A DNA stretch of 64,000 nt from the IMG/VR virus record IMGVR_UViG_3300035698_035310, positions 124,001 to 188,000 of that record. The stretch is one strand, 5' to 3'. This document shows, piece after piece, positions 1,212-61,015 of this stretch. The notes under the pieces were generated by a model that was not told the origin of the DNA, did not search any database, and saw only the letters and a list, made by a program, of their open reading frames with translations. The translations under genes were made by a program, and so were the position numbers. Each line of letters begins with the position of its first letter. Position 1 is the first letter of the stretch.

Positions 1212-2123
1212 ATGATGAACAACTACAACAGTTTTTATAAAGATTCAGTAGAATATTATGAAAGTGAAGAAAAATTTAATAGAAATAATGTTGTGATTGC
1301 AGGTGGTAACATCGTTGAATTGAAAACTAGTGTTATCGTTGTTACTCCTAAAAAAGAACCGGTAACACGCGATTCTATGATTGAAGATTTATTAGGTGAC
1401 GCTGGTGTAAAACGCACTCGTATGCGTAATTCTGGTAATGAATTTGTGAAATATACCAAGCTACCCAATGACGATGACATCGATGACGATTTGACAGAAG
1501 AAGATTATATAAATGAATACGATATTGAAACCGTCGCGTATGATAACAAACAACGAATAAGTGGCGTTGACGAGGGATTGCTTTACGGTGGTTCAACCGC
1601 CAAATTGAATAATGAATTAGCCAAATCTATTGTAGATGATATGGACGACACAGGTAATACAACGGATAAACTTGACGAAGTGCTTGATCGCATAGGAAAA
1701 CGCGTTGAAACACCAACCGAAATCAATAAAATGATTGATCCTATTGTCGAAATAGCCGAAGATACAATCAATAAAGTTACCGATGCAGCACGTGAAGGAA
1801 TCGTCAGTGCACTTGATCGTATTTCATCACCCGATTATCCTGATTTCATTAATGAAATAGTCAATAAAAACATTGATCTTGAAATAGAAAATGATGATAC
1901 ATCATTAGGATCAATGCCACGAGCGTCTGATCCCAAACCACAGGTTGACAAATTGGGTGAAATAGACGATACGGAATATTTTAACAGCGATATCATTCGT
2001 GGTGGAGTGCCACAAAAAAATGATACACAAGAGAGTGATGCACCTACACCCGAAGCTGAACGTTTTCATGAAATGCTCCGTAAACGAGATTTCGGAATGG
2101 GCGGTGGTGGTAGTGCTGGATGA
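1212..2123 (+). CDS. acidic hypothetical protein
   Basis: long Asp/Glu-rich ORF; first ATG at 1212 (track start is TTG 1206). Confidence 0.7.
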   Translation: MMNNYNSFYKDSVEYYESEEKFNRNNVVIAGGNIVELKTSVIVVTPKKEPVTRDSMIEDLLGDAGVKRTRMRNSGNEFVKYTKLPNDDDIDDDLTEEDYINEYDIETVAYDNKQRISGVDEGLLYGGSTAKLNNELAKSIVDDMDDTGNTTDKLDEVLDRIGKRVETPTEINKMIDPIVEIAEDTINKVTDAAREGIVSALDRISSPDYPDFINEIVNKNIDLEIENDDTSLGSMPRASDPKPQVDKLGEIDDTEYFNSDIIRGGVPQKNDTQESDAPTPEAERFHEMLRKRDFGMGGGGSAG

Positions 2124-2380: not shown

Positions 2381-2457
2381 GGGCGTGTATTCCAACCGGT
2401 AGAGAAACGAGACTTAAAATCTCGACAGTGTGGGTTCGAATCCCACCACGCCTACCA
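2381..2457 (+). tRNA. trnL: tRNA-Leu(UAA), short variable arm, encoded CCA
   Basis: acceptor GGGCGTG/CACGCCT; anticodon arm CGAGA-CTTAAAA-TCTCG; T arm GTGGG-TTCGAAT-CCCAC; A73 then CCA. Confidence 0.9.
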
Positions 2458-2461
2458 CATA

Positions 2462-2539
2462 GCTTCCGTCGTCTAACTGGATAAGGCACCCGACTTCTAA
2501 TCGGGATATTTGTAGGTTCGAGTCCTACCGGGAGCACCA
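2462..2539 (+). tRNA. trnR: tRNA-Arg(UCU), encoded CCA
   Basis: acceptor GCTTCCG/CGGGAGC; anticodon arm CCCGA-CTTCTAA-TCGGG; T loop TTCGAGT; ACCA end. Confidence 0.95.
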
Positions 2540-2540
2540 A

Positions 2541-3542
2541 TTAAAAAATATTAATATTTTTTAAAAACATATGAAATGAACTGTATTCGATATTAAAATA
2601 TTGTTGAATTTCATTTGGGGTTTTTTTATCTATATGATACATATGGCATAATATATTTATGCTGTTAAGTATATTGCGTTCAGTGTTATATGGATCACCC
2701 AACACAAAATTAAACATTTTGGATAATACTTTTGCTGATATTTTGTTGGGATTATTCCAACCTAGTGCTGGTTTCAATTTGTTATTATATACACGACCTG
2801 TTATAGATGAATATTTAATCGGAGTATATGGATGTTTAATCGCAGAACGTCGATTGATATGTTTTATATTGGCTGTATCGATTTTTTGTTCAAATAAATA
2901 ATTGTCAAATGGTTCATTGTGTTTAGTTGCCCATTTTAAAATATTATCAAATAATATTTCTTTGGATATTGCATTATCTGAACCTTTTAATGAATTAACC
3001 GAATTCATTAAAAATTGACAATTAGCAGGATGTGAAATAATATCAGGATGCATTTTTAAATCAAATCCGCTTTTTACTGAAAACATATGATCATGGCAGA
3101 CGCCATCTTTTTTTGTTAAGGGATTATAAAATCCATGCTTAACATATAAATCATAACCAAGAAATGTATCATAATATTTTTCAATAAATCTAAATGAACA
3201 TAATTGTTTATATCGTTTATATTGCACGCCGTGCGTTGTAGGCAAACCATTACTTTTTATTAATGACGCACGTTGCCGCTGTCTTGATTCGGTTGTGCGT
3301 ATATTATTAGAATGTATACCACCACATTTGGACGAACAAAAAATATTACCATTTTGATGCTTTTCGTATGATATAATAGATTTACATATGGAACATAATT
3401 TTGGATTTTCTTCATATACATTTTTAACTTTAGCACGACTGTATTTTTGTGAACAGGTTTGTGTACAAAATTTGCTATGACGCTTATCTTTTGGTGTAAA
3501 CTCTATTTTACACTGATGGCATATATATTTGTTTGTTGACAT
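2541..3542 (-). CDS. HNH-type homing endonuclease-like protein
   Basis: N-terminal CxxC/CxxxC repeats plus DHMFSV...HPANCQ...NSLK motif; free-standing, convergent on the tRNAs. Confidence 0.65.
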   Translation of the reverse strand: MSTNKYICHQCKIEFTPKDKRHSKFCTQTCSQKYSRAKVKNVYEENPKLCSICKSIISYEKHQNGNIFCSSKCGGIHSNNIRTTESRQRQRASLIKSNGLPTTHGVQYKRYKQLCSFRFIEKYYDTFLGYDLYVKHGFYNPLTKKDGVCHDHMFSVKSGFDLKMHPDIISHPANCQFLMNSVNSLKGSDNAISKEILFDNILKWATKHNEPFDNYLFEQKIDTANIKHINRRSAIKHPYTPIKYSSITGRVYNNKLKPALGWNNPNKISAKVLSKMFNFVLGDPYNTERNILNSINILCHMYHIDKKTPNEIQQYFNIEYSSFHMFLKNINIF

Positions 3543-3549
3543 ATTGGTA

Positions 3550-3646
3550 TCCTTTCGATTATAAATACGATGGCGGTTGGATTTTCCTTTCGGTGTCCTT
3601 GTGATATATATTTCCAGTATGTATCACGCCGCTATTACTATTTATC
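3550..3646. promoter_or_regulatory. convergent TATAAATA-type boxes flanking a structured element; SD-complementary repeat
   Basis: TATAAATA (+) 3560-3567; GATAAATA (-) 3646-3639; TCCTTTCG at 3550-3557 (SD of the HNH gene on -) repeated at 3585-3592. Confidence 0.6.
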
Positions 3647-3704
3647 TTGACAAACCTTATTTTCTCCTATAATATGAACACATCATTATAAAGGGAGAAA
3701 TAAT

Positions 3705-19867: not shown

Positions 19868-22126
19868 ATGCCTAACGGATTTGACCAACGACACATTTCT
19901 ATAATGCTTCAAAAAGCAGTAACATTAGCAGAAAAATACGATCACATATATATAACATTAGAACATATCAGTTTAGTATTACTGGATGATAAGTCCGTTG
20001 ATCACGGTATTAAAGAATGCGGCGGCGACATAAAACTTATTAAAGAAATGGTTTTGACTGCATTGTTAGATGAAGCAGATATAACTGAAGCAGGAACTGA
20101 GCCACAACCAACAAGAGCAGTCATCAATGTTATTCAACGGGCAATCCAGCATTCTGTTGGATCAGGCCGCAATACAGTTGAACCATTTTATCTTATGGCA
20201 AGTTTGTTAATGGAAAAAGATTCCGTTGCTGTATGGGCATTAGCACAACAAAATGTTGATCGTGTAAGTTTTATTAGAACTATAAATGTTCCACCATCAG
20301 GACAAAATAAAGGTGGCCCGATGAATGAACTCGATCCTATAACGGGTCAACCTATGCCACAACCTGAAAATGCATTAAGAGATTATTGTGTTAATTTGAA
20401 TGAAAAGGTAATTGCTGGTGATATTGATCCATTGATAGGTCGCGAAAAAGAAATTGAACGGTCACTACAAGTTTTATCTAGACGACGCAAAAACAATCCA
20501 TTGCTTGTTGGTGAGCCAGGAGTTGGTAAAACCGCTATTGCAGAAGGATTGGCATGGAAAATTGTTAATGAAACCGTGCCAAATTATATCAAAGATTCTA
20601 TTGTATATTCGTTGGATATTGGTGCACTTATGGCTGGTGCCAAATTTCGCGGTGATGTCGAAGAACGATTAAAAGCGGTTCTTGCCGGATTGGAAGAAGT
20701 TGGCAAAACCAACAAAACCATATTATTCATTGATGAAATTCATACCATTATTGGTGCGGGTGCTACATCAGGTGGAAGTATGGATGTTAGTAACCTATTG
20801 AAACCCGCACTTGCTGCTGGTTCATTACGTTGCATGGGTTCCACCACATATGCTGAATATAATAAGTATTTCGAAAAAGATGCGGCACTTAAGCGTCGTT
20901 TCAAAAAAATTGATATTATTGAACCTACTGTTGATGAAACAAAAACTATTATCAAAGGTTTGGCAAAATATTTTGCTGAGTATCATGAAGTTAAATTCAC
21001 AAAAGAAGCATTAATGAGTGCAGTTGATTTATCCGTTAAGCATATACACGATAACAAACTTCCAGATAAAGCGATTGATGTTATTGATGAGGCGGCGGCA
21101 GCACAAAGATTATTCGATGGCGAAGATCGCCTTGAAATCATTGATGTTAAACAAATTGAAGAAACCGTTGCAAAGATTGCAAGGATTTCTATTGATGCAA
21201 CATCAAAAACCGACAAAGATAGATTGCGTAACCTTGCAGAAAATCTAACAACACATGTGTTTGGTCAAGAAGAAGCGATTGATGTTCTAACCAAGGCAGT
21301 TAAATTAAGCAAATCTGGATTGCGTGAAGAAAATAAACCGATTGGTAATTTCTTATTCAGTGGACCTACAGGCGTAGGTAAAACCGAAGTTGCAAAACGT
21401 CTTGCCGATGAACTAGACGTTCCGTTGGTGCGATTTGATATGTCTGAATATATGCAAAAGCACGAAGTGTCTAAACTTATTGGATCGCCACCTGGTTATG
21501 TTGGTCATGATGATAGTGATGGATTTTTAATTGAAGAAATTGATAAGCATAATTATTGTGTTTTATTGTTAGATGAAATCGAAAAAGCACACCAAGATAT
21601 ATTCAACGTTCTGTTACAAGTTATGGATAATGCAACACTAACCGGTGGTCGCAATAAAACAGTGCGCTTTGACAATGTTATAATCATCATGACATCAAAT
21701 GCTGGTGCATCAGACCTTGCAAAAGAAGTTATGGGATTTGGCAACGAAGAGCGAGTTGGCGATGATCTTATAGCCATCGAAAAATTATTTACACCTGAAT
21801 TTAGAAATCGTTTGGATAAAATCGTTGGATTTAAACCATTACAACAAGAAATAATGAATAAAGTTGTTGTTAAATTTATAAAACAATTGAAAGTTCAACT
21901 TAAAACACAGGATGTTAAACTTACGTTGATGAAGAAAGCCATTGAGTGGCTTGCCGTTAAAGGATACAGTTCCAAATATGGAGCACGACCACTTTCGCGT
22001 GTAATAGACAATCATATCAAGCAGCCAATATCTGAAGAGTTATTATTTGGTCAACTTGAAAATGGTGGTTCAGTTAAAATTGACATCGTTGAAGACGAAC
22101 TTGAATTCACTTACAAACCAAAATAA
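19868..22126 (+). CDS. clpA: ATP-dependent Clp protease ATP-binding subunit ClpA
   Basis: Clp-N domain, GEPGVGKT and GPTGVGKT Walker A motifs, FIDEIH, RFDMSEY, no ClpB M-domain. Confidence 0.92.
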
Positions 22127-25929: not shown

Positions 25930-26154
25930 TTAGCCCCAGCGTAGCTTAAAAGCCATCGCTGATTCAAGATTAAAAAATAAAACACCAGTGGAACACATGC
26001 ATGCACCACTGGTGTATCCATCTAAAATAAAATCTTCTTTTACTTTTAGATTTTCAAATAACCAATTATCTATAAATTTTTCAGATATCACTGTATCATA
26101 TTCAAAATATAAATCACTTGTTCTTCTTATTTTATAAAATTCTTCTACAGCCAT
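25930..26154 (-). CDS. FKLRW-family small protein
   Basis: IDNWLFEN...ESAMAFKLRWG. Confidence 0.75.
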   Translation of the reverse strand: MAVEEFYKIRRTSDLYFEYDTVISEKFIDNWLFENLKVKEDFILDGYTSGACMCSTGVLFFNLESAMAFKLRWG

Positions 26155-26351
26155 CTCATTTTGAATCCCATTGAATCTTCTTCATCTAACAACCAGACCA
26201 CCGATGATGGTGGTTTTCGGACATCGGCAGAATCACATATGGCATAACTGTCTTCATCGATATTGTCGATCAGCCATAGTTTAACTTCATCCATTTCGTT
26301 GTTGGAAATATAGAATTTTGTGTTGTTTATTTGACGTATTTTCATATCCAT
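26145..26351 (-). CDS. FKLRW-family small protein
   Basis: KLWLIDN...[12 protein letters not shown]. Confidence 0.75.
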
Positions 26352-26710
26352 CGTAATTTAAATGCAACCACGTCGCTTTCATTATTGAATACAAATTTAT
26401 ACGTTAAATTATTTCGTTTGTCTTCAGTATAAGACCGGACGTAATATTCTTCAACGTTTTCTTTGAGCCACTCATTCATGTTATTTACCGTGACTTCATC
26501 ATAGTTTTGCAACAACGCATAATATGATTGCTGTTCAACAATTTCAAATGATGGCTCCAATGATTTAGACTGAACTGTGTGTATCGTTTCACTGCATATA
26601 TCAACGCATTCATTGCAAATATATACATCTACACTAGCAATTAAATGTTTTACTTGCGATTGATCTTTTTTACAAAATGAACATGTAGGTACTTTATTTT
26701 TTATAGCCAT
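26342..26710 (-). CDS. ClpX C4 zinc-binding domain fused to an FKLRW-family domain
   Basis: [30 protein letters not shown] followed by NEWLKEN...[12 protein letters not shown]. Confidence 0.85.
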
Positions 26711-28346: not shown

Positions 28347-28742
28347 ATGGTACAAAAAATGACACGTGACGAATTTCAAAAAATGGTTGATGACGCGGCT
28401 GGTTATCAGTGCAAGAAAACTGATGGAGTGGTGACTGCACTTAAAATCGAATGGTCTGTTGGCGGTCAATCTGGTGGTAGTTGTTGGGATGAAGGAGACT
28501 CGACATATCATGGAACAAGCGGTGAAGCAGAGCCAGAGTTCGAAGACCTTGATAGTATCTTGCTGGCGGTTGCCCCACAACTCAGTTTTTTACATTATAA
28601 AAAATTAATGCAAAAAATTGAAACCGACGATTACCGTCAAAACGATTACTATGGAAACTACACCGATTACGCAACAAAAACAATCACAGTCGATGATATT
28701 TGGGTGTTTTTGATTGAGTATGACATGATTGAACAAGCATGA
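28347..28742 (+). CDS. conserved phage hypothetical protein
   Basis: WSVGGQSGGSCW, EPEFEDLD, DYYGNYTDY. Confidence 0.7.
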   Translation: MVQKMTRDEFQKMVDDAAGYQCKKTDGVVTALKIEWSVGGQSGGSCWDEGDSTYHGTSGEAEPEFEDLDSILLAVAPQLSFLHYKKLMQKIETDDYRQNDYYGNYTDYATKTITVDDIWVFLIEYDMIEQA

Positions 28743-35435: not shown

Positions 35436-36158
35436 TTATTTATGTTTACAATTGTCATTATGCCACCTATTTAATGCTCCATAATTTCGAGTTGATAAAT
35501 TGCAATGAGGGCATGTTTTATATGGCTGTGATAATTTTGCTTTAGACATTTTATTTTTAGCCGATATTGTTTTAGGTTTTCCTTTTGCCGCATTGCTCAT
35601 TTTTTGTTTAGTTGTTTCGGAGTGTGTTCTTCCGTATTTACCTGTTAATGCCGCGCTAATACATTTTTTAGTTTCTTTGCTGAGTTTTTTACCTATATTC
35701 GCCAAAAATAATTTTTGTTTGGTTTCTGCTGTATGTTTTTTGCCTACCCCCGCTAAAGATAATTTTTGTTTGGTTTCTTCTGATAATTTCTTACCTTTAT
35801 GAGCATTGCTTATTTTTAATTTAGTTTTTTCAGTATGTTTGTATCCACTTTTACAATAAAATTTATTGTCGCCGTTGTGTTGATTTAGATAATTTGTATT
35901 ATTGGCTGCGTCAATTTTTGATAAAACTTTGCTTTCCCATAATCTGGCTTTTTTTGGATTATTTGGAAATTCTTTACGTATTTCATATATAAAATTTTCT
36001 AATCCATATTTTTGTATAAGGCTTTCGATAATTGCCGATGAAGTAAAATATGTAGACCACAAATCAGATGGGTGGCAGTTTTTAGCATATCTTACCCCAT
36101 AATAATGTTGGCCCGTTTCTAAAAAAGTTATGCGATATGTATAAGGTATATGATTCAT
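35436..36158 (-). CDS. GIY-YIG-type homing endonuclease with NUMOD3-like repeats
   Basis: YTYRIT...HYYGVR, YFTSS; repeated (H/L)(T/S)EETKQK(I/L)S...GK units; terminal CPHC. Confidence 0.85.
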   Translation of the reverse strand: MNHIPYTYRITFLETGQHYYGVRYAKNCHPSDLWSTYFTSSAIIESLIQKYGLENFIYEIRKEFPNNPKKARLWESKVLSKIDAANNTNYLNQHNGDNKFYCKSGYKHTEKTKLKISNAHKGKKLSEETKQKLSLAGVGKKHTAETKQKLFLANIGKKLSKETKKCISAALTGKYGRTHSETTKQKMSNAAKGKPKTISAKNKMSKAKLSQPYKTCPHCNLSTRNYGALNRWHNDNCKHK

Positions 36159-36165
36159 CTTGATT

Positions 36166-36272
36166 TTCCTTGGCTTTTATGATAGTATAAATAATAAAGT
36201 AGTGGGACAGCCCAACTTCCTTGGCGGGTTTTAGTTGTTGAAACCAACTAATTACCACTATATCTATTTATT
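36166..36272. promoter_or_regulatory. convergent TATAAATA-type boxes flanking a structured element; SD-complementary repeat
   Basis: TATAAATA (+) 36186-36193; AATAAATA (-) 36272-36265; TTCCTTGGC at 36166-36174 (SD of GIY-YIG gene on -) repeated at 36217-36225; stem TAGTGG/CCACTA. Confidence 0.6.
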
Positions 36273-36288
36273 TTTTGGAGTTAAAATC

Positions 36289-37506
36289 ATGAATGACCAT
36301 CGCGAGATTGCTACAGCTTTAGACTTATTTCATTTTGAGGAGCATTCACCAGGAATGGTATATTGGCATCCTGAAGGGTTTAAATTATATCGAACCATAG
36401 AAGAATATATGCGAAGCATGCATGAAAAATATGGATATAAAGAAATTAGAACACCAATAATGGTCAATAAATCTTTATGGAAATTGTCTGGTCATTGGGA
36501 TAAATTTCAAGACAATATTTTTATTGCTGGTGAAATAGGTGAAGTAATAAGCGATGAGTTAATTTATACTGACGGGCAATATGTAATGTCTCCGATGAAT
36601 TGTCCAAATCATATACAAGTGTACCAAAAGGGAACAAAGTCTTACAAGATGCTACCTGATCGTTTATTTGAATTTGGTGTGGTGCATCGCAATGAACCAT
36701 CTGGATCATTGGCTGGCATTATGAGATTGCGAAGTTTTACACAAGATGACTCGCATATACACTGTACTGAAGATCAAATTTTGAGTGAAACAACCAATTT
36801 TATCAATATGCTTCAAGAAGTTTATTCTAAGTTTGGGTTCAATGACGTCGCTGTAAAACTTGCCACTCGATGTGAAGAACGCATTGGCGACGATGCCAGT
36901 TGGGATAAAGCCGAGAAAGCATTAGAAGATGCTTGTATACATCTTGGATTGGAATACACAATTAATCCCGGTGAATCAGCATTCTATGGCCCAAAACTTG
37001 AGTTCACGCTACAAGATAGCCTTGGTCGTGATTGGCAATGTGGAACCATCCAGATTGATTTTAACATGTGCGAACGATTGGGTGCTACATACATTGACGA
37101 AAATGGTGATAAGAAACATCCGGTATTGATTCACCATGCTGTATTGGGAAGTTTGGAACGCTGGGTTGGTGTATTGCTTGAGAACAGCAATGGTGAACTA
37201 CCGTTGTGGCTTGCCCCTACACAAGTGGTTGTTGCCAGTATTACCAGTGATGTTAATGACTATGCTGAAGAGAAAATGGTTACACTTAGTGGTATCGGAT
37301 ATCGAGTTGAGTTGGATGACCGAAATGAAAAAATCGGTAAGAAAATCAAAGACGCACAGAAACGACGTATTCCATATATGCTTATTGTGGGTAAAAAGGA
37401 AAAAGAGAATCAAATGGTCAACGTTCGCAAATTGAACGGCGACCAAGATGATATGGAGTTGATAGATTTTATAGGATCATTCGTCAAATCTACAAATGAA
37501 AGGTGA
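36289..37506 (+). CDS. thrS: threonine--tRNA ligase lacking the N-terminal TGS/editing domains
   Basis: starts at DHREI...DLFHF...PGMVYWHPEG; MNCPNH, HRNEPSG, FTQDDSH, AFYGPKL, WQCGTIQ; GGAG SD before ATG 36289. Confidence 0.93.
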   Translation: MNDHREIATALDLFHFEEHSPGMVYWHPEGFKLYRTIEEYMRSMHEKYGYKEIRTPIMVNKSLWKLSGHWDKFQDNIFIAGEIGEVISDELIYTDGQYVMSPMNCPNHIQVYQKGTKSYKMLPDRLFEFGVVHRNEPSGSLAGIMRLRSFTQDDSHIHCTEDQILSETTNFINMLQEVYSKFGFNDVAVKLATRCEERIGDDASWDKAEKALEDACIHLGLEYTINPGESAFYGPKLEFTLQDSLGRDWQCGTIQIDFNMCERLGATYIDENGDKKHPVLIHHAVLGSLERWVGVLLENSNGELPLWLAPTQVVVASITSDVNDYAEEKMVTLSGIGYRVELDDRNEKIGKKIKDAQKRRIPYMLIVGKKEKENQMVNVRKLNGDQDDMELIDFIGSFVKSTNER

Positions 37507-37750: not shown

Positions 37751-38056
37751 ATGGGCATGTTTGATTGGGTTAAAAGTGAATATTCGCTGCCACAAATGCA
37801 ACCACCAACCGATGAGTTTCAAACCAAAGACGCTTTCTGCAATCTTGATGTATACACATTAGATAAAGATGGCATACTGTGGGTTGAATATCAAGATTGG
37901 AGCATGAATGATCTTGGTGATAAAAAACTATCACATTTTGATGGCGAAATGTATTTCTATGGGTCTACCAAAGCTACAGGGCGCATGCAAGAATACTTAG
38001 CAGTATTCATTGATGGGACACTTGAAACAGTAGAGAAAGTTAATTATGGGCCGTAA
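37751..38056 (+). CDS. conserved phage hypothetical protein
   Basis: MGMFDWV, EFQTKD motif. Confidence 0.7.
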   Translation: MGMFDWVKSEYSLPQMQPPTDEFQTKDAFCNLDVYTLDKDGILWVEYQDWSMNDLGDKKLSHFDGEMYFYGSTKATGRMQEYLAVFIDGTLETVEKVNYGP

Positions 38057-39200
38057 ATCAAGACAGCGCGAAGAAGAAATGTTGGCTGGTGAACAAAAAA
38101 TCACCAACCGCTTGAGTTCGCATACGTCACAAACAAAGAAAAAATTTGGCGCACTTGGATGGCAGGAAGTTATATTCAAAGCGATTGCTGAAAATCATAA
38201 ACATTGGATCAATGCACCATCAACGTGGGTGAACACCAAAAAAACTAAAAATATAGACGCGTTGCGCCACGACATGGTTCGTTATGTATTCGGTGTATAC
38301 AAGTGTCCCAAATTTCTTGAAGACGTTTGGCTCCCAACCCATCGCGAAACATATAATTATGCTAATCATAGACGGCATGAATCAGATGAAATTGAGAATA
38401 AAGATGTTCATTATGTTGCATGGTATCTAACTGTCGCACAGGGCGGATCGTTATATAAGTCCAACACCAAAGGTATACTGACCAAAAAAGAAACACATGC
38501 ATTTTTACATGCACCCAAGAATAACACAGTCAAACAAAATATTTGGTGGGCACGTGCTTATTGCGAGAGTGATAACATTGGAACAGCAACAAGAATTGCT
38601 CAATCCAGACTTGTAAATCGCTCGATGTCTAATGAATTTTGGATTTCGGTGATGAGATTCTTTTCAAAATATCCAACCAGCGTCAATGAAATAAATGATT
38701 TGTTGGATTATTTTATATACGCATTACAAGAAAACGAGGATTACACACTTAAAGGTCGTTCATTGGAAGCGGTAAAAATTAGTTGCGTGGAATGGCATAG
38801 ATTTCTTAACAAACAAAAATCTATTGGTGGTGGAACGTGGGCTGGAAGTGCCGTTGATAACGGAAGTTATACCACAGGAAAAGATGAACATAAAGTCAAG
38901 TGGTTGATAACACAAATCAGAACAGGCAATGAATTACTCAAAGAAGGGCAGAAAATGCGCCATTGTGTTGTTTCATACAAACGACGATGCTCAGAAGGGC
39001 ATTGTTCTATTTGGTCACTAACTTCACATGATATGATTGGTAATAACAAACGCTGTTTAACAGTCGAGTTATCTAGTAACAATCAAATCATTCAGTGTCG
39101 TGGATTGGCGAATCGTATGCCGAGACCAATTGAAAATAATATCCTTGGACGATGGTGTGTTGATAATAGTCTTCAGGCCAATCGTAATTCAAGATGGTAA
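38046..39200 (+). CDS. PcfJ-like domain protein
   Basis: ELLKEGQKMRHCVVSY...SIWSL...LTVEL...IIQCRGLANR. Confidence 0.75.
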   Translation: MGRKSRQREEEMLAGEQKITNRLSSHTSQTKKKFGALGWQEVIFKAIAENHKHWINAPSTWVNTKKTKNIDALRHDMVRYVFGVYKCPKFLEDVWLPTHRETYNYANHRRHESDEIENKDVHYVAWYLTVAQGGSLYKSNTKGILTKKETHAFLHAPKNNTVKQNIWWARAYCESDNIGTATRIAQSRLVNRSMSNEFWISVMRFFSKYPTSVNEINDLLDYFIYALQENEDYTLKGRSLEAVKISCVEWHRFLNKQKSIGGGTWAGSAVDNGSYTTGKDEHKVKWLITQIRTGNELLKEGQKMRHCVVSYKRRCSEGHCSIWSLTSHDMIGNNKRCLTVELSSNNQIIQCRGLANRMPRPIENNILGRWCVDNSLQANRNSRW

Positions 39201-56087: not shown

Positions 56088-56142
56088 AATAAATATAGAC
56101 ATAATCGAAAGTTATATAGTAGTTGGATACCATATAACTTTC
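56088..56142 (+). promoter_or_regulatory. AATAAATA box plus perfect 11-bp hairpin upstream of Seg-like endonuclease
   Basis: GAAAGTTATAT (56107-56117) / ATATAACTTTC (56132-56142). Confidence 0.45.
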
Positions 56143-56172
56143 TAAACAATACGCAACGATAGGAGTGGCGTC

Positions 56173-57036
56173 ATGTCTAAAGATATTTATAACACTAAAT
56201 TTATATTCGGTCAAGATTATCATGGATTTATTTATGAATGGGTTGATAATTCTAATGGTAAAAAATATATAGGATCGCATAAAGGGTCGATTGATGATGG
56301 ATATATAGGTTCAGGAACATATTTTATTTCTGCTTATAAAAAAAGAACCCATTGTTTTAGTCGAATAATATTAGAATATATATCAAAAAATATAGATGAT
56401 ATATATACCATTGAACAAAAATGGTTAAATATGGTAAATAATATATCATCAAATGAATCATATTATAATCTATCAAATAACGCAACAGGGGGAAATTCTG
56501 AAAAAAACTACGCACGAAAAAGAAATGGTGAATTTACTGAAAAAGAAATGATTGCACATGAGCGAAAAGCCAATGGTATATTTACACCAAAAGAACTAGA
56601 GTTTCATAAACGTCGAAAAAATAGATTTTTAAATGGTGATTATACAAAAGCAGAAAAACAGTCTTATATACGATCTAAAGAGCGAAAATCAGCAGGGAAT
56701 TTTACAGATGCAGAAATTAAATATTTTAGTGAACAAAAAAAGAGAAAATCAAATGGTATATTTACACCAAAAGAAATAGAGTTTCATAATAATCAAAGTA
56801 ATCGGAAGTCGGCAGGAAATTTTACAGATGCCGAGTTAAAATGTTTAAATCTCGATAAAATAAGAAAATCAAAAGGCTTATTTACCGATGCGGAATTAAA
56901 AAATTTTAAGAACATGAAGGGAAAACGATGGCTTACCAAAGATTTTATCAATAAATTAATATCAAAAAATTTAATACAACAATATATTGATGCCGGTTGG
57001 ATATTTGGAAAATATAAAAAAATCAATCCCAACTAA
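56173..57036 (+). CDS. GIY-YIG homing endonuclease (Seg-like) with C-terminal repeats
   Basis: GFIYEW...KKYIGSH...DGYIGSG, FSRIILE, EQKWL, YYNL; seven G-x-(F/Y)-T-x-x-E repeats. Confidence 0.88.
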   Translation: MSKDIYNTKFIFGQDYHGFIYEWVDNSNGKKYIGSHKGSIDDGYIGSGTYFISAYKKRTHCFSRIILEYISKNIDDIYTIEQKWLNMVNNISSNESYYNLSNNATGGNSEKNYARKRNGEFTEKEMIAHERKANGIFTPKELEFHKRRKNRFLNGDYTKAEKQSYIRSKERKSAGNFTDAEIKYFSEQKKRKSNGIFTPKEIEFHNNQSNRKSAGNFTDAELKCLNLDKIRKSKGLFTDAELKNFKNMKGKRWLTKDFINKLISKNLIQQYIDAGWIFGKYKKINPN

Positions 57037-60000
57037 ATTTATCAATCCCATCAAAATCTATTTCACTTCCGTCTGATAATGTTAAACTTCCTGACATTTC
57101 TTCCGATGTTGGAAGATTGTTTGGATTGCTATCTGCCGTAAATGTTTCACCATCAACTGTTAATGCCCACCCTTGTGTGCCTTCCATATTTAGTGTATCT
57201 GTTCCCTCGCCGCCCGATATCCAATCACCGCCACCAAATCCGTCGCCGCCTTCGCCACCGAAGATAAACATATCATCGCCACCATTGCCCATTACGTGGT
57301 CATTAGCATCTGTTGCATCGTCGCTATCAAATGTATCATCTGCTTTTTTTCCTTTGTCTTTTCCATCTATTTCATTATATTCAGAACCGCCTTCACCACC
57401 CTCGCCGCCTTCACCACCATCTTTATCTTTTTTATCTTTACCTTTTCCACCTTCACCGCCTTCACCGCCATGTCCATGCCCATGTGATCCACCTTCACCG
57501 CCTTCACCACCTTCATTGCCTTCAACGTCGATAATGGTCGTAGCGGTTCCGGTTCCACCTTCACTGTCCACTATATTATATGTGAAACTATCTTCACCAG
57601 AAAATCCTTCATATGGCGTATAAGTCCATGTTCCATTTTCATTATCTATTATAATTCCATTTTCAGGATCGTCAATGCTGGTAATAGTTATAGTGTCGCC
57701 ATCTAAATCTGTATCATTAGATAGCAAATCTTCAGAAGAAAACGTTATAGAATTATCATCATCAATATCAAATTCATCATCAACACCAAGAGGTGTGGTA
57801 TTTCCTGTTTCATCTACTAACCACGTGGATGATTGTGTGTCAACAGATACAACAGATGCCGTAACAGGTGTATCTCGTTCTATTTCTACTGTTCCATCTG
57901 AATACGTTAATGTGTTAACCGAAGTGTTTGATGTTTCTGTTGTTATGTCTGTAGTAGTTGTTTCTGTAAACACTCGATTAATCACAGTTGTTTTTGTTCC
58001 ATCGTCATTTTCAACAATCGATTCATTATTTACAAATGTTATGGTTGATTCTGGTTCACTCGTTATAATATTTTCTTCTGTTTCTATGGTTGTAACAATT
58101 TCAGGATCAACATATTCGGTTTCGACATTAGTTAATGTTTCCGTTCGTGTATCTGAGGTTATTTCGCTATCAATGTTGGGTGTTCCATTTTCGACTTCAA
58201 CCGTTCCGTCTGAATATGTTATTGTGCTGACGGGAGTTATCGTTGTGGTGGTTGTGGTTTCAGTCGCATATTCATTTGTGGTTGTTGTAGTAGTATCTAT
58301 TTGTTCGCGGTTATTATCCGTATCGATAGTTGTATCACTTTCTATTATGTCGTTAGTTGTTTCCCATGTTTCATCGCCCACAACAGCATCGGTAGTGGTA
58401 ACGTATTCAGTGGTTATTGTTGGTTCTTCATATGTAGTAACAATTTCGTCCGTGGTATCAACTCTTGATTCAGTTGTTGTATCTGCTGTAATAACAGGAT
58501 CGTCCTGTTCAATTTCAACAGTTCCATCTGAATACGTAATGGTTGTTATTTGTGTGGTTGTGGTTGTGGTTGTTGTATCAGTTTCATAATTGTTTGTGGT
58601 TGTGGTCGTTGTATCTAATTGCTCACGGTTATTATCCAAATCATTTGAACGTGACACATCATCTTCGGTTGATGTTGAAATTAAGGTTTCATCGCCTACG
58701 ACAACGTTGGTTGTTACTTCTTCTGACGTAACAATTTGTGGCTCTTCGTAAACAACGTTGGTATCAGTTAACACTTCTTCTCTTGTATCGGTTGTAGGTT
58801 CAACTGTTTCAACTGGCGTTCCGTATTCTATTTCAACTGTTCCATCTGAATAAGTGATAGTGATAACGGGTGTTGTTGTTACGGTTGTAGTTGTTATTGT
58901 ATCATATGTATTTGTGGTTGTGTTGGTAGTATCTAATTGTTCGCGGTTATTATCCGTATCAATAGTGCGAACAGTTTCTGATTCTGTTTCGGTGTTAGAT
59001 AATATTTCATCGCTAACAACTACTGTTGTTTCATGCTCATAGGTTTCAACAATTTCAGGGTCTTCATTCGTAGTTATTGTTTCTGAAGTCACTTCATCGC
59101 GTGTTGATGTATCAGTGGTAGTTTCTATCGCTGGTGTGCCGTATTCTGTTTCTACAGTGCCGTCGCTGTAAGTTATGGTATGAACAGGCGTAGATGTGGT
59201 TGTGGTGGTTGTATCAACCGCATAGGTATCTGTGGTCGTTGTTGTCGTATCTACCCGTTCGTTATTATATTCTGTTTCAATAGTTGTCACTACATTTTCT
59301 TCTGATGCTGTTCCAGTTTGATATTCATCGCCAATTGTATCCACTGATTGCACATCAGTCGTGATTGTAATAACAGGCTCTTCTGTACTTGTGGATATAT
59401 CAATTTCGCGGATTTCATCACGTGTTGATGTATCAATTTGAACTGTGTTATCGGTTGGTTCTGCGCGTTCGATTTCAATAGTTCCATCGCTATATGTAAT
59501 GGTTTGAACTTCGATTGTTGTTGTTGTTTCCAATATGGGCGTTTCAAATGTATCTGTATATTCACGCGTCACAGTAACTATTTCTTGATTATTATCTAAA
59601 TCGTTAACACGCGATGATGAATCATAGAACTCTGTATTAGTTAAAGTTTCTTTGCCGTTGTGAAGGTCGGTTGAAATTTCATATGTGACAACAATGGTTG
59701 GTTCTTCATATGTGGTAACTATTTCATCGGCAATATCGGTTCTTGTTTCTGTATTTGTATTTTTTGTAATAGACGGATCGCCCTGTTCAATTTCAACTGT
59801 TCCATCTGAATAAGTGATAGTTATTACTGGTGTTATTGTGGTGGTAGTCGTTGTATCAATGGCATAGTTATTCGTGGTAGTAGTTGTTGTATCTACTTGT
59901 TCACGATTGTTATCAGTGTCTATTATACGGTCAATTTCTGTCCCGGTTTCTGATCCAATTAGAATTTCATTACCAATTTCATTTGATATTTCAGTTGTAT

Positions 60001-61015
60001 ATTCGGTTGTGATAACAGGTAGTTCTATATCAGTAGCAAATATTGCATCTCTAATCGCAACTGTTGTATCAACTGTGGTGTTGGATTCTATCACAGGGTC
60101 ACCCACAATCGTTTCAATAGTGCCATCACTATATGTAATAGTTTCGGTTGGCGTTGTTGTTTCTGTGACCGTTGAATCAATCGTTGTGGTATCTGTATAA
60201 TTACGAGTCGTTGTGACTATTTCTTGATTGTTTGCTAGATCATTTTCTTTTGAAACTACATCTTCGTATGTTGTTACAACACATGGATCATCGATAACTG
60301 TATTTGAAATAATTTCGTATGAAATTTCTCTAGACATCTCGGTCACTGGTTCTACAGCATCATCGCCACCACCACCATTGGTGCCATTATCAATAGGAAA
60401 CCCAAGATCGGGGTTAAGCACAGAATTAAGAATTGCGTCAAAGTCAATTTCAGGCATAACGTCTGTATTCGCGAGTGGATCATTTGGCACCTCGTCAACG
60501 CTTTGATTTACATCATTTATTGTAGAAAATCCGCTATCTTCCGCACGCTGCTGTTCTTCTTCGGCTACTTTTTTAAATACATCATCGCCATGCATTTCGC
60601 GTGTATCAAATATCAAACTGGCACGATCTATAGCATAATCTATTTGTTCTGATGTAAACCCATTCTCAATTAATTCATTCCTTGTGTAACCATTGACGTC
60701 AATAGATACATTATTTATATCATTAAACGCTACTATATTATTTTCAGTATTGACATATATACCCAACGATGTCTGTATTACTGTGCCTTCTGTGATTAGT
60801 GCACTTAACAATTCCGCTTCTGTTAGTTGTGAACCCATGTGAATATTTTGTGAACCAGAACCAAACACATCTTCTTTATCGCCACCATCACCTTCGTGAA
60901 GTTGTTGTACCGATGCATCAAGGTCAATTTCATCTTCGGTCTGTAAGACAGTTAAATCATCAAGTATTGAGTGATTTTCGCGAACATCGTCGTCGTCATT
61001 TGTTATTTCAGCCAT
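57023..61015 (-). CDS. large acidic Thr-rich repeat protein with cadherin-like/Big domain and RTX-like Ca-binding tail (adhesin-like)
   Basis: eight ~106-aa T(I/L)TYSDGT repeats; LLSNDTDLDGD...GTWTYTP...DSFTY; GEGGEGG tracts; GNGGDD and GGEGTDTL nonapeptides. Confidence 0.8.
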   Translation of the reverse strand: MAEITNDDDDVRENHSILDDLTVLQTEDEIDLDASVQQLHEGDGGDKEDVFGSGSQNIHMGSQLTEAELLSALITEGTVIQTSLGIYVNTENNIVAFNDINNVSIDVNGYTRNELIENGFTSEQIDYAIDRASLIFDTREMHGDDVFKKVAEEEQQRAEDSGFSTINDVNQSVDEVPNDPLANTDVMPEIDFDAILNSVLNPDLGFPIDNGTNGGGGDDAVEPVTEMSREISYEIISNTVIDDPCVVTTYEDVVSKENDLANNQEIVTTTRNYTDTTTIDSTVTETTTPTETITYSDGTIETIVGDPVIESNTTVDTTVAIRDAIFATDIELPVITTEYTTEISNEIGNEILIGSETGTEIDRIIDTDNNREQVDTTTTTTNNYAIDTTTTTTITPVITITYSDGTVEIEQGDPSITKNTNTETRTDIADEIVTTYEEPTIVVTYEISTDLHNGKETLTNTEFYDSSSRVNDLDNNQEIVTVTREYTDTFETPILETTTTIEVQTITYSDGTIEIERAEPTDNTVQIDTSTRDEIREIDISTSTEEPVITITTDVQSVDTIGDEYQTGTASEENVVTTIETEYNNERVDTTTTTTDTYAVDTTTTTTSTPVHTITYSDGTVETEYGTPAIETTTDTSTRDEVTSETITTNEDPEIVETYEHETTVVVSDEILSNTETESETVRTIDTDNNREQLDTTNTTTNTYDTITTTTVTTTPVITITYSDGTVEIEYGTPVETVEPTTDTREEVLTDTNVVYEEPQIVTSEEVTTNVVVGDETLISTSTEDDVSRSNDLDNNREQLDTTTTTTNNYETDTTTTTTTTQITTITYSDGTVEIEQDDPVITADTTTESRVDTTDEIVTTYEEPTITTEYVTTTDAVVGDETWETTNDIIESDTTIDTDNNREQIDTTTTTTNEYATETTTTTTITPVSTITYSDGTVEVENGTPNIDSEITSDTRTETLTNVETEYVDPEIVTTIETEENIITSEPESTITFVNNESIVENDDGTKTTVINRVFTETTTTDITTETSNTSVNTLTYSDGTVEIERDTPVTASVVSVDTQSSTWLVDETGNTTPLGVDDEFDIDDDNSITFSSEDLLSNDTDLDGDTITITSIDDPENGIIIDNENGTWTYTPYEGFSGEDSFTYNIVDSEGGTGTATTIIDVEGNEGGEGGEGGSHGHGHGGEGGEGGKGKDKKDKDGGEGGEGGEGGSEYNEIDGKDKGKKADDTFDSDDATDANDHVMGNGGDDMFIFGGEGGDGFGGGDWISGGEGTDTLNMEGTQGWALTVDGETFTADSNPNNLPTSEEMSGSLTLSDGSEIDFDGIDKFSWD
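57890..60140 (-). repeat. degenerate tandem repeat, ~318-bp period, 8 copies
   Basis: SDGT-coding cores near 60123, 59802, 59484, 59160, 58842, 58524, 58205, 57893; 31-nt identity at 59791-59821 and 58831-58861. Confidence 0.8.

Follow-up and report, generated by a model that had tools for sequence, protein, structure and literature searches.

Is the 87-bp stretch that lies between a homing-endonuclease-like gene and thrS in a jumbo phage a chance arrangement of AT-rich words, or is it one copy of a regulatory element, and if so, on which strand and on which gene does it act? The window analysed here comprises 64,000 nucleotides, bases 124,001-188,000 of the 359,044-bp virus record IMGVR_UViG_3300035698_035310, which has 36% G+C, is estimated by CheckV to be 94% complete and was assembled from salt-lake metagenomes. 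Most genes of this phage are on the plus strand. The locus is the 130-bp spacer between a lone minus-strand gene lying among plus-strand genes and a short threonyl-tRNA synthetase gene (Table 1).

A sequence-only reading of the window had described two convergent boxes spanning exactly 87 bp, a closed structure with two arms between them, and a duplication of the Shine-Dalgarno (SD) region of the GIY-YIG gene, and had pointed to a second cassette of the same length and layout but unrelated sequence in front of an HNH gene. We confirm this observation, as every letter is present where it had been reported. Two details need correction. The box-to-box span ranges from 82 to 101 bp across the family with a mode of 87-88, and 87 bp is therefore not a constraint. 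The two window copies are also not unrelated in sequence, as a covariance model built from the subfamily of the copy at 36186-36272 also detects the copy at 3560-3646 (E about 0.005). The interpretation given in that reading, a general module for phage homing endonucleases in which each small RNA is matched to its own SD, is partly supported: its comparative predictions hold, while transcription from either box, a discrete small RNA and translational repression remain inferences.

Table 1. Features of the two cassettes in the window and of their flanking genes (window coordinates).
Position	Strand	Feature	Basis
35436..36158	-	Free-standing homing endonuclease gene, 240 aa, preceded by the cassette; GIY-YIG-like N-terminal domain followed by three NUMOD3 repeats	Pfam NUMOD3 66.8 bits; SegE_GIY-YIG E 5.7e-4, below the cut-off; PHROG 314 'homing endonuclease' 2.4e-34
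36166..36174	-	SD word of the endonuclease mRNA, GCCAAGGAA on the minus strand (TTCCTTGGC on the plus strand), 7 nt upstream of the ATG at 36158-36156	Sequence; identical to the word at 36217-36225; predicted mostly unpaired in the mRNA alone (P 0.71)
36186..36193	+	TATAAATA box antisense to the endonuclease; inferred promoter of the antisense RNA, T4-type +1 at about 36199, the first base of P1	First T conserved in all 11 copies of this genome, found with only ATAAATA specified; other copies retrieved with the 8-mer specified; this copy lacks a good -35
36199..36205	+	P1, 5' strand of the closing stem; TAGTGG at 36200-36205 pairs with CCACTA at 36255-36260	Minimum-free-energy fold; all 5 modelled pairs show changes on both sides, 91% of cells paired
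36209..36230	+	P2 hairpin; CCAA-CTTCC-TTGG at 36212-36224; apical region 36214-36225 carries the anti-SD word TTCCTTGGC (36217-36225); CUUCC unpaired at the apex	Predicted fold; cognate loop-SD duplex -16.4 kcal/mol against a mean of -10.5 for non-cognate targets
36231..36251	+	P3 hairpin, 7-bp stem and 7-nt loop; TAGTTG at 36233-36238 pairs with CAACTA at 36246-36251	Predicted fold; most variable helix, all 8 modelled pairs show compensatory changes
36255..36261	+	P1, 3' strand	Predicted fold; covariation
36265..36272	-	AATAAATA box on the endonuclease-sense strand (TATTTATT on the plus strand); inferred -35-less promoter of the endonuclease mRNA, +1 at about 36259; on the plus strand the U-rich tail following P1	Sense box G/A/T-ATAAATA in 26/26 copies, -35 in only 1/26
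36271..36280	+	T6 run followed by the GGAG SD of thrS	Sequence; no terminator-like or strong sigma-70-like site called
36289..37506	+	Short threonyl-tRNA synthetase gene (thrS), 405 aa; divergent neighbour downstream of the cassette	Pfam tRNA-synt_2b 5e-44, HGTP_anticodon 4e-19; blastn hits to phage thrS genes
3560..3646	+	Other cassette of the window, same plan, GGCGGT subfamily; word TCCTTTCG at 3585-3592 (P2 apex) and 3550-3557 (SD region)	Fold z -4.8
2541..3542	-	HNH-like homing endonuclease gene, 333 aa, behind the cassette at 3560-3646	PHROG 23051 1.2e-18; HNH PHROGs 15471 and 1271 at 1e-6 and 3.5e-5; no Pfam hit

A repeated cassette in front of nuclease genes

Taken alone, this copy is unimpressive. 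Its predicted fold is only marginally better than that of shuffled sequences (z -1.9), and the bare word TATAAATA is not enriched in the window, with 8 occurrences against 11 expected. The significance comes from repetition. In the whole phage genome, ATAAATA followed by TATTTAT 80-100 bp later occurs 13 times, whereas the divergent arrangement occurs once and tandem arrangements never. Block-shuffled genomes give a mean of 1.0 and a maximum of 4 in 300. Eleven of these sites are cassettes 13-37 nt upstream of a homing-endonuclease-like ORF. Ten lie to the right of the start codon of a minus-strand ORF, and the eleventh is a mirror image in front of a plus-strand paralog. The eleven ORFs comprise GIY-YIG, several HNH PHROGs and PHROG 23051, which shares a domain with the HNH-like ones, and one of them looks decayed. 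The two remaining sites (121874-121969 and 345775-345868 of the genome) and a 102-bp site in the window (56088-56190) were excluded, as their right arm is formed by the codons ATT TAT of the (G)IY motif of a nuclease gene.

Pattern scans of IMG/VR followed by scans of whole records found 15 further copies in four other virus records, designated G001 (ten copies), G002 (two), G003 (two) and G004 (one). G004 is a distant relative of this phage with syntenic genes at 37-42% amino-acid identity. A generic scan with TATAAATA-N64-84-CTATTTATC returned mostly chance hits and cases in which the right arm is again the codons of a plus-strand nuclease gene, and these were not counted. A subfamily-specific scan (TATAAATA, GGGACA, TATTTAT) returned 76 distinct hits, of which 37 lie in further contigs and have an ORF of at least 150 aa on the opposite strand that starts 8-26 nt from the box. 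Sampled ORFs of this independent set are GIY-YIG with NUMOD3, HNH, homing endonucleases of PHROG 3339/559/314, PD-(D/E)XK-like endonucleases and one TnpB, and a few are unknown. The cassette precedes nuclease genes of at least four families, with products of 190-490 aa, in many virus records. All copies share one plan, with a perfect TATAAATA box on the strand antisense to the nuclease gene, a closing stem P1, two hairpins P2 and P3, and an N-ATAAATA box on the nuclease-sense strand.

A chance arrangement could be argued from the lack of enrichment of the bare box and from the many chance or codon-derived pattern hits in other viruses. It is refuted by the counts against shuffled and re-paired controls given here and below.

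Blastn searches of the locus and of two cassettes against GenBank phages gave only thrS or chance hits, and a peptide-pattern search of IMG/VR with the ThrRS protein returned no relative. Relatives of the GIY-YIG protein (<=37% identity) lack the cassette. The cultured phages nearest by a ClpA-like protein, which are Atu_ph07, Phosso, PA5oct and Acinetobacter phage MD-2021a (one contig), carry no copy. The search for sequencing runs containing this phage found only salt-lake DNA metagenomes, and four of these showed identical sequence and no variant lacking the nuclease gene.

Helix covariation and the matched SD word

In each copy, the strand antisense to the nuclease gene is modelled as a closing stem P1 with two hairpins, P2 and P3. 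Alignment of all copies with MAFFT misplaced hairpin P2, and we therefore built a covariance model from 15 copies and used it to align 23. In this alignment, 86.9% of cells form standard pairs, compared to 55.9% when partners are shuffled and 37-51% when partners are slid by 1-3 columns. All 17 pairs vary on both sides, with 114 double-sided changes against 37.5, and the covariation score is 0.749 against 0.222. None of 500 shuffles reaches the observed value on four of the five measures, and for pairs changed on both sides one of 500 does. The alignment was fitted to the model, which inflates the pairing percentage, but the slid controls share this bias and stay low. G.U cells outnumber A.C cells 36 to 12, and pairing is 87.5% on the modelled strand against 80.9% on its complement. 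The folded strand is therefore the one antisense to the nuclease gene. No Rfam 15 family matches in the window apart from two tRNAs at gathering scores, and none matches at E <= 1 in 36120-36320 on either strand. ARAGORN finds no tRNA or tmRNA here, and a tRNA-like element was rejected.

In nearly every copy, the P2 apex repeats 7-12 nt of the SD region of the adjacent gene, while the letters differ from copy to copy. Examples are CCTTCCGG, TCCTTTCG, CTTCCTTGC, ACCCTAGT, TCCTCTAG, CTCCGGTT, CTCCAGT and TCTCCGA, with words up to 12 nt in the wider set. For the ten minus-strand copies of this genome, excluding the mirrored one, the longest shared words sum to 76 nt, a value not reached by shuffled interiors (maximum 64 in 2000) or by re-paired flanks and interiors (maximum 72 in 5000). 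For the first 26 copies, the predicted duplex between P2 region and SD averages -14.2 kcal/mol against -9.6 kcal/mol for non-cognate partners, and 0 of 20000 permutations are as good. For the copy at 36186-36272, only 2 of 25 foreign targets are as good as its own. Four of these 26 copies show no cognate advantage, and the CUCC/UCCU core would pair with any SD, so that specificity rests on a few flanking bases. In the 37 independent copies, the mean shared word is 8.05 nt against 5.69 nt when re-paired (0/20000). Closely related copies show parallel changes in loop and flank, as CCTTCCGG in two copies corresponds to CCTTTCG in both places of the window's first cassette. The shared word lies at the P2 apex and is predicted to be more accessible than the rest of the RNA (0.61 against 0.43).

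Could the functional strand instead be the nuclease mRNA leader? In this view, the SD copy displayed in the leader hairpin would be a ribosome standby or decoy site, or both identical words would bind one protein, such as a translational repressor or the nuclease itself as autoregulator. The mRNA does carry two copies of the word, one of them in a hairpin apex, and I-TevI represses its own late promoter through an operator that resembles its homing site (PMC2988022). However, the G.U against A.C counts and the pairing percentages favour the opposite strand. Ribosome binding would constrain only the SD core, yet identity extends into variable flanks, up to 12 nt, and a 16S-pairing explanation was rejected. 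Nucleases with unrelated folds and DNA-binding modules share one architecture, and the invariance of a perfect TATAAATA on the antisense strand would go unexplained. We consider this reading unlikely.

A function at the DNA level, as a miniature inverted-repeat mobile element, a recombination or homing substrate or a hairpin in single-stranded DNA, with the repeated word as target-site duplication, appears very unlikely. The element has 7-8 bp terminal inverted repeats, many copies per genome and near-identical copies beside unrelated genes, and helix covariation cannot tell RNA from single-stranded DNA. However, the two copies of the word do not flank a unit. The stretch between them splits helices P1 and P2, so that an insertion bounded by them cannot have created the structure. 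Copies are not scattered but occur in front of nuclease genes, apart from the few unknown ORFs noted above, at a fixed distance from the start codon, and the outermost arm position is usually mismatched, with T opposite C in 19/26 copies.

Convergent boxes and the proposed antisense RNA

The two boxes differ. Of the first 26 copies, 15 carry at least 5/6 of TTGACA 17-18 nt upstream of the antisense box, and eight of these are perfect. In some copies this -35 overlaps the start codon, in others it lies between the SD and the start codon. In the independent set, the -35 is mostly absent. In this genome, CTTGACA is strongly oriented upstream of genes (30 against 2), and so are TAATAAA and AATAAAT. 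Two promoter classes are therefore likely. NATAAATA is the late-promoter form reported for S-PM2, and TATAAATA is the form in T4 and KVP40 (PMC2984593). A gp55-like late sigma is present in G002, but searches of this genome with T4 gp55, its homolog from G002 and PHROGs 12791 and 234 found nothing, and the class of the -35-less box is inferred from motif orientation and from T4-type phages. A Pfam Gp23 search gave only a 40-residue partial match. With T4-type spacing, the antisense and sense starts would fall on the two ends of P1, which accounts for the span of this copy (8+5+61+5+8 = 87).

Our preferred explanation, held with moderate confidence, is a portable regulatory cassette that sits between a homing-endonuclease gene and its promoter. 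The sense box would start the nuclease mRNA, whose first ~60 nt would be the cassette interior. The antisense box would start an RNA of roughly 60-75 nt exactly at the foot of the three-way structure, and the U-rich complement of the sense box, which follows the structure, may end it, although the consensus scan called no canonical intrinsic terminator and its sigma-70-like sites are at chance level. The apical loop of P2 would pair with the SD of its own nuclease mRNA and hold down translation of a potentially harmful nuclease. This is the simplest model that explains the strand bias, the invariant antisense box and the loop-SD co-variation. The mRNA alone is predicted to leave its SD about half unpaired (mean 0.52) and has no anti-SD partner, and the T4 solution of a cis hairpin over the RBS (PMC2988022) is therefore not used here. 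The comparison of sequences establishes the conserved architecture, the helix covariation, the strand bias, the association with mobile nuclease genes and the co-variation of loop and SD. That both boxes are promoters, that a discrete small RNA forms, that its loop pairs with the SD and that this represses translation is inferred from sequence alone, as is homing activity of the nucleases.

The antisense RNA would also be fully complementary to the mRNA leader, which carries the second copy of the word, and loop-SD pairing would compete with this long duplex. The duplex may serve as a fast, irreversible capture step, may be an RNase III substrate, or may act as a sponge that sets a threshold. 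Where a consensus -35 is present, the antisense RNA could be made early by host polymerase and the nuclease mRNA later from the -35-less box, which would echo the late-only logic of T4 nucleases. This timing is inference.

A broader reading is about as likely as not: a widespread, undescribed class of phage small antisense RNAs that forms a portable guardian module, travels or recombines with selfish nuclease genes of unrelated folds, GIY-YIG, HNH, PD-(D/E)XK-like and even TnpB, and sets their translation through a loop co-evolving with the SD flank of each gene. Each promoter box would double as the U-rich tail for the opposing transcript. Homing endonucleases are abundant selfish genes in phages, and how a genome tolerates a dozen of them is only partly understood. 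A dedicated antisense RNA module shared by unrelated nuclease families would be a new layer of control and a clear natural example of loop-SD co-evolution. It could yield compact, orthogonal translational repressors, each matched to its own target, and would add a phage-encoded RNA family absent from Rfam. It also hints that some phage TnpB genes are held in check in the same way.

Relation to known systems and modularity of the cassette

Antisense-RNA control of a mobile or harmful gene is already known, and we place the cassette with it, though its design is distinctive and its distribution among uncultivated phages is broad. In IS10/Tn10, face-to-face promoters a short distance apart produce RNA-OUT, a small, stable stem-loop antisense RNA whose loop attacks the translation start region of a mobile-element gene (RNA-IN) and limits its translation. 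There, SD and start codon lie inside the transcript overlap. Here, the overlap would be 36199-36259, the SD lies just outside it and would be reached through the duplicated word in a hairpin apex, the RNA is a predicted three-way junction, and the target is a homing endonuclease rather than a transposase. In type I toxin-antitoxin loci, especially par (fst/RNA II) of pAD1, convergent transcription is combined with direct repeats read in opposite directions, which gives the antisense RNA complementarity to the ribosome-binding region of a harmful gene. The cognate-specific direct repeat of 7-12 nt between SD region and P2 apex agrees with this. The target here, however, is a 200-490 aa nuclease and not a small hydrophobic membrane peptide, there is no evidence of post-segregational killing, and the locus is a phage one repeated many times per genome. 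P22 sar, a 68-69 nt phage antisense RNA, pairs with the ribosome-binding region of the neighbouring gene ant and blocks its synthesis (PMC12197685). It is a single locus whose complementarity comes from direct overlap, without a duplicated word or an association with nuclease genes.

In T4-type phages, nuclease translation is kept low or late by an RBS-sequestering hairpin with an internal late promoter, as in I-TevI, segB and Aeh1 mobE (PMC2988022). The aim would be the same, and the same kind of TATAAATA box sits next to the SD. However, there the anti-SD strand lies in the same RNA and the box is on the sense strand, so that late transcripts lack the 5' arm of the hairpin. Here the sense RNA has no anti-SD partner, the perfect box points the other way, and the sense box lies about 100 nt upstream of the start codon. 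CfrI of cyanophage S-PM2 is an antisense RNA tied to a homing endonuclease gene in a T4-type phage (PMC2984593; PMC12197685). It is about 225 nt long, runs antisense to the nuclease ORF and to psbA, has no known function, and no matched anti-SD loop or convergent-box cassette has been described for it. Literature searches returned the T4 controls (RBS hairpin, autorepression and RNase E), CfrI, the classic phage antisense RNAs sar, OOP and c4, and PeSL cassettes. None describes a convergent-box cassette with a loop matched to the SD of a homing endonuclease, although absence from the library searched is no proof of novelty.

Does the cassette act mainly on transcription of the flanking phage genes? 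PeSL cassettes of T4-type phages are short repeated intergenic modules that combine a promoter with a stem-loop and are shuffled between genes (PMC2839356; PMC4122927). PeSLs flank variable genes in general, whereas the association here is with nuclease genes, and they are not known to carry convergent boxes, a three-way junction or a loop matched to the neighbour's SD. In the manner of PeSLs, the cassette would be a portable promoter-terminator or insulator that stops or processes plus-strand read-through coming antisense through the nuclease gene and restarts transcription toward the downstream gene, with the structure as terminator or stabilising 5' end. T-runs follow the right arm in several copies, including this one, and a review of T4 nucleases notes that invading genes may bring promoters that act on neighbours (PMC2988022). 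The sequence-only reading had suggested that the plus-strand transcript may lead into thrS, and this is plausible for this copy, because no other promoter is visible between the cassette and the thrS SD at 36277. However, this view gives no reason for the P2 apex to track the nuclease gene's own SD flank letter for letter in dozens of diverged copies. In addition, several copies (four of the 11 in this genome, and the G003 copies) are followed by their own TTGACA...TATAAT promoter for the downstream gene, so that restart is not needed there, and no canonical terminator was detected. We regard it as an unlikely main function, which may be an added role rather than an alternative.

The cassette plus translation start region is 87-95% identical between copies whose nuclease bodies share no DNA similarity, and cassettes within one genome resemble each other more than those of other genomes. 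This points to recombination or gene conversion of a portable module and would also fit a shuffled transcriptional module, as would the finding that nuclease paralogs co-oriented with their neighbours lack the cassette. These paralogs carry only a [G/T]ATAAATAG box five bases before the ATG.

Other nuclease genes and layouts

In the sequence L297 from IMG/VR, one cassette of the same subfamily stands in front of a TnpB gene rather than a classical homing endonuclease, and a related copy lies in L306, a second such sequence. The TnpB gene is identified by the Pfam families OrfB_IS605, Cas12f1-like TNB and HTH_OrfB_IS605. The loop word ACCTGTA matches its start region.

A third homing-endonuclease gene in the window, assigned to PHROG 314, has a different layout. 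Here, an AATAAATA box is followed by a hairpin leader, the SD and then the ATG, which is followed a few codons later by ATT TAT. The apparent right arm at this locus is coding sequence. Two further sites in the phage genome are of the same kind, and an antisense box inside the (G)IY codons may be coincidence. Outside the window, nuclease paralogs co-oriented with their neighbours carry [G/T]ATAAATAG followed by TTAT and then the ATG. With a T4-type start site, the mRNA would begin at the A of the ATG, making it leaderless.

Coordinates of the loci and genes (window, the stretch analysed; genome, the whole phage record, G000:C1; L207 equals G004:C1:11450-14534 of the virus record G004)
Sequence	Position	Strand	Feature
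L297	5435-6661	minus	TnpB gene
L297	6670-6757		cassette in front of the TnpB gene
window	56088-57036		locus of the third homing-endonuclease gene
window	56173-57036	plus	third homing-endonuclease gene
genome	121874-121969		site of the same kind as the third-gene locus
genome	345775-345868		site of the same kind as the third-gene locus
genome	about 26135-26155, 28640-28650 and 238385-238402		box sites of nuclease paralogs co-oriented with their neighbours
window	2381-3542		HNH-like nuclease gene and tRNA pair
window	2541-3542		HNH-like nuclease gene
window	2381-2539		tRNA-Leu(TAA)/tRNA-Arg(TCT) pair
window	3647-3673		sigma-70-like TTGACA...TATAAT promoter
L207	about 1474-1476		in-frame ATT
L213-L222 (G001 cassettes)	about 1509-1514		AAGGAG
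window	36289-37506		phage ThrRS
window	19868-22126		ClpA-like ATPase
window	26342-26710		protein with a ClpX-type zinc finger
window	38046-39200		PcfJ-like protein
window	57023-61015		protein with a cadherin-like domain

Start regions and possible alternative pairings

The nuclease ORF behind the cassette of G004 has no ATG, GTG or TTG at a normal distance from its AAGGAG. An in-frame ATT lies 8 nt downstream of the SD and may be the start codon. In the cassettes of the virus record G001, the five bases between the TATAAATA box and P1 read AAGGA, and with the first base of P1 they form AAGGAG. This can pair with the CUCC loop of P2 in transcripts that start further upstream, while its complement in the nuclease mRNA leader could pair with the true SD.

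Neighbouring genes and promoters

A sigma-70-like promoter for the downstream plus-strand gene often follows the cassette directly, as observed at window 3647-3673 and to the right of several other cassettes. For the promoter at 3647-3673, the spacer is only 15 bp. The HNH-like nuclease gene ends 2 nt from the tRNA pair, which recalls T4 segB, a gene that sits in a tRNA cluster. The phage ThrRS is a short form of 405 aa that has only the class II catalytic core and the anticodon-binding domain, with no N-terminal domain hit. Among the other genes in the window, the ClpA-like ATPase shows 48% identity to phage homologs, and the protein with the cadherin-like domain has a length of 1330 aa.
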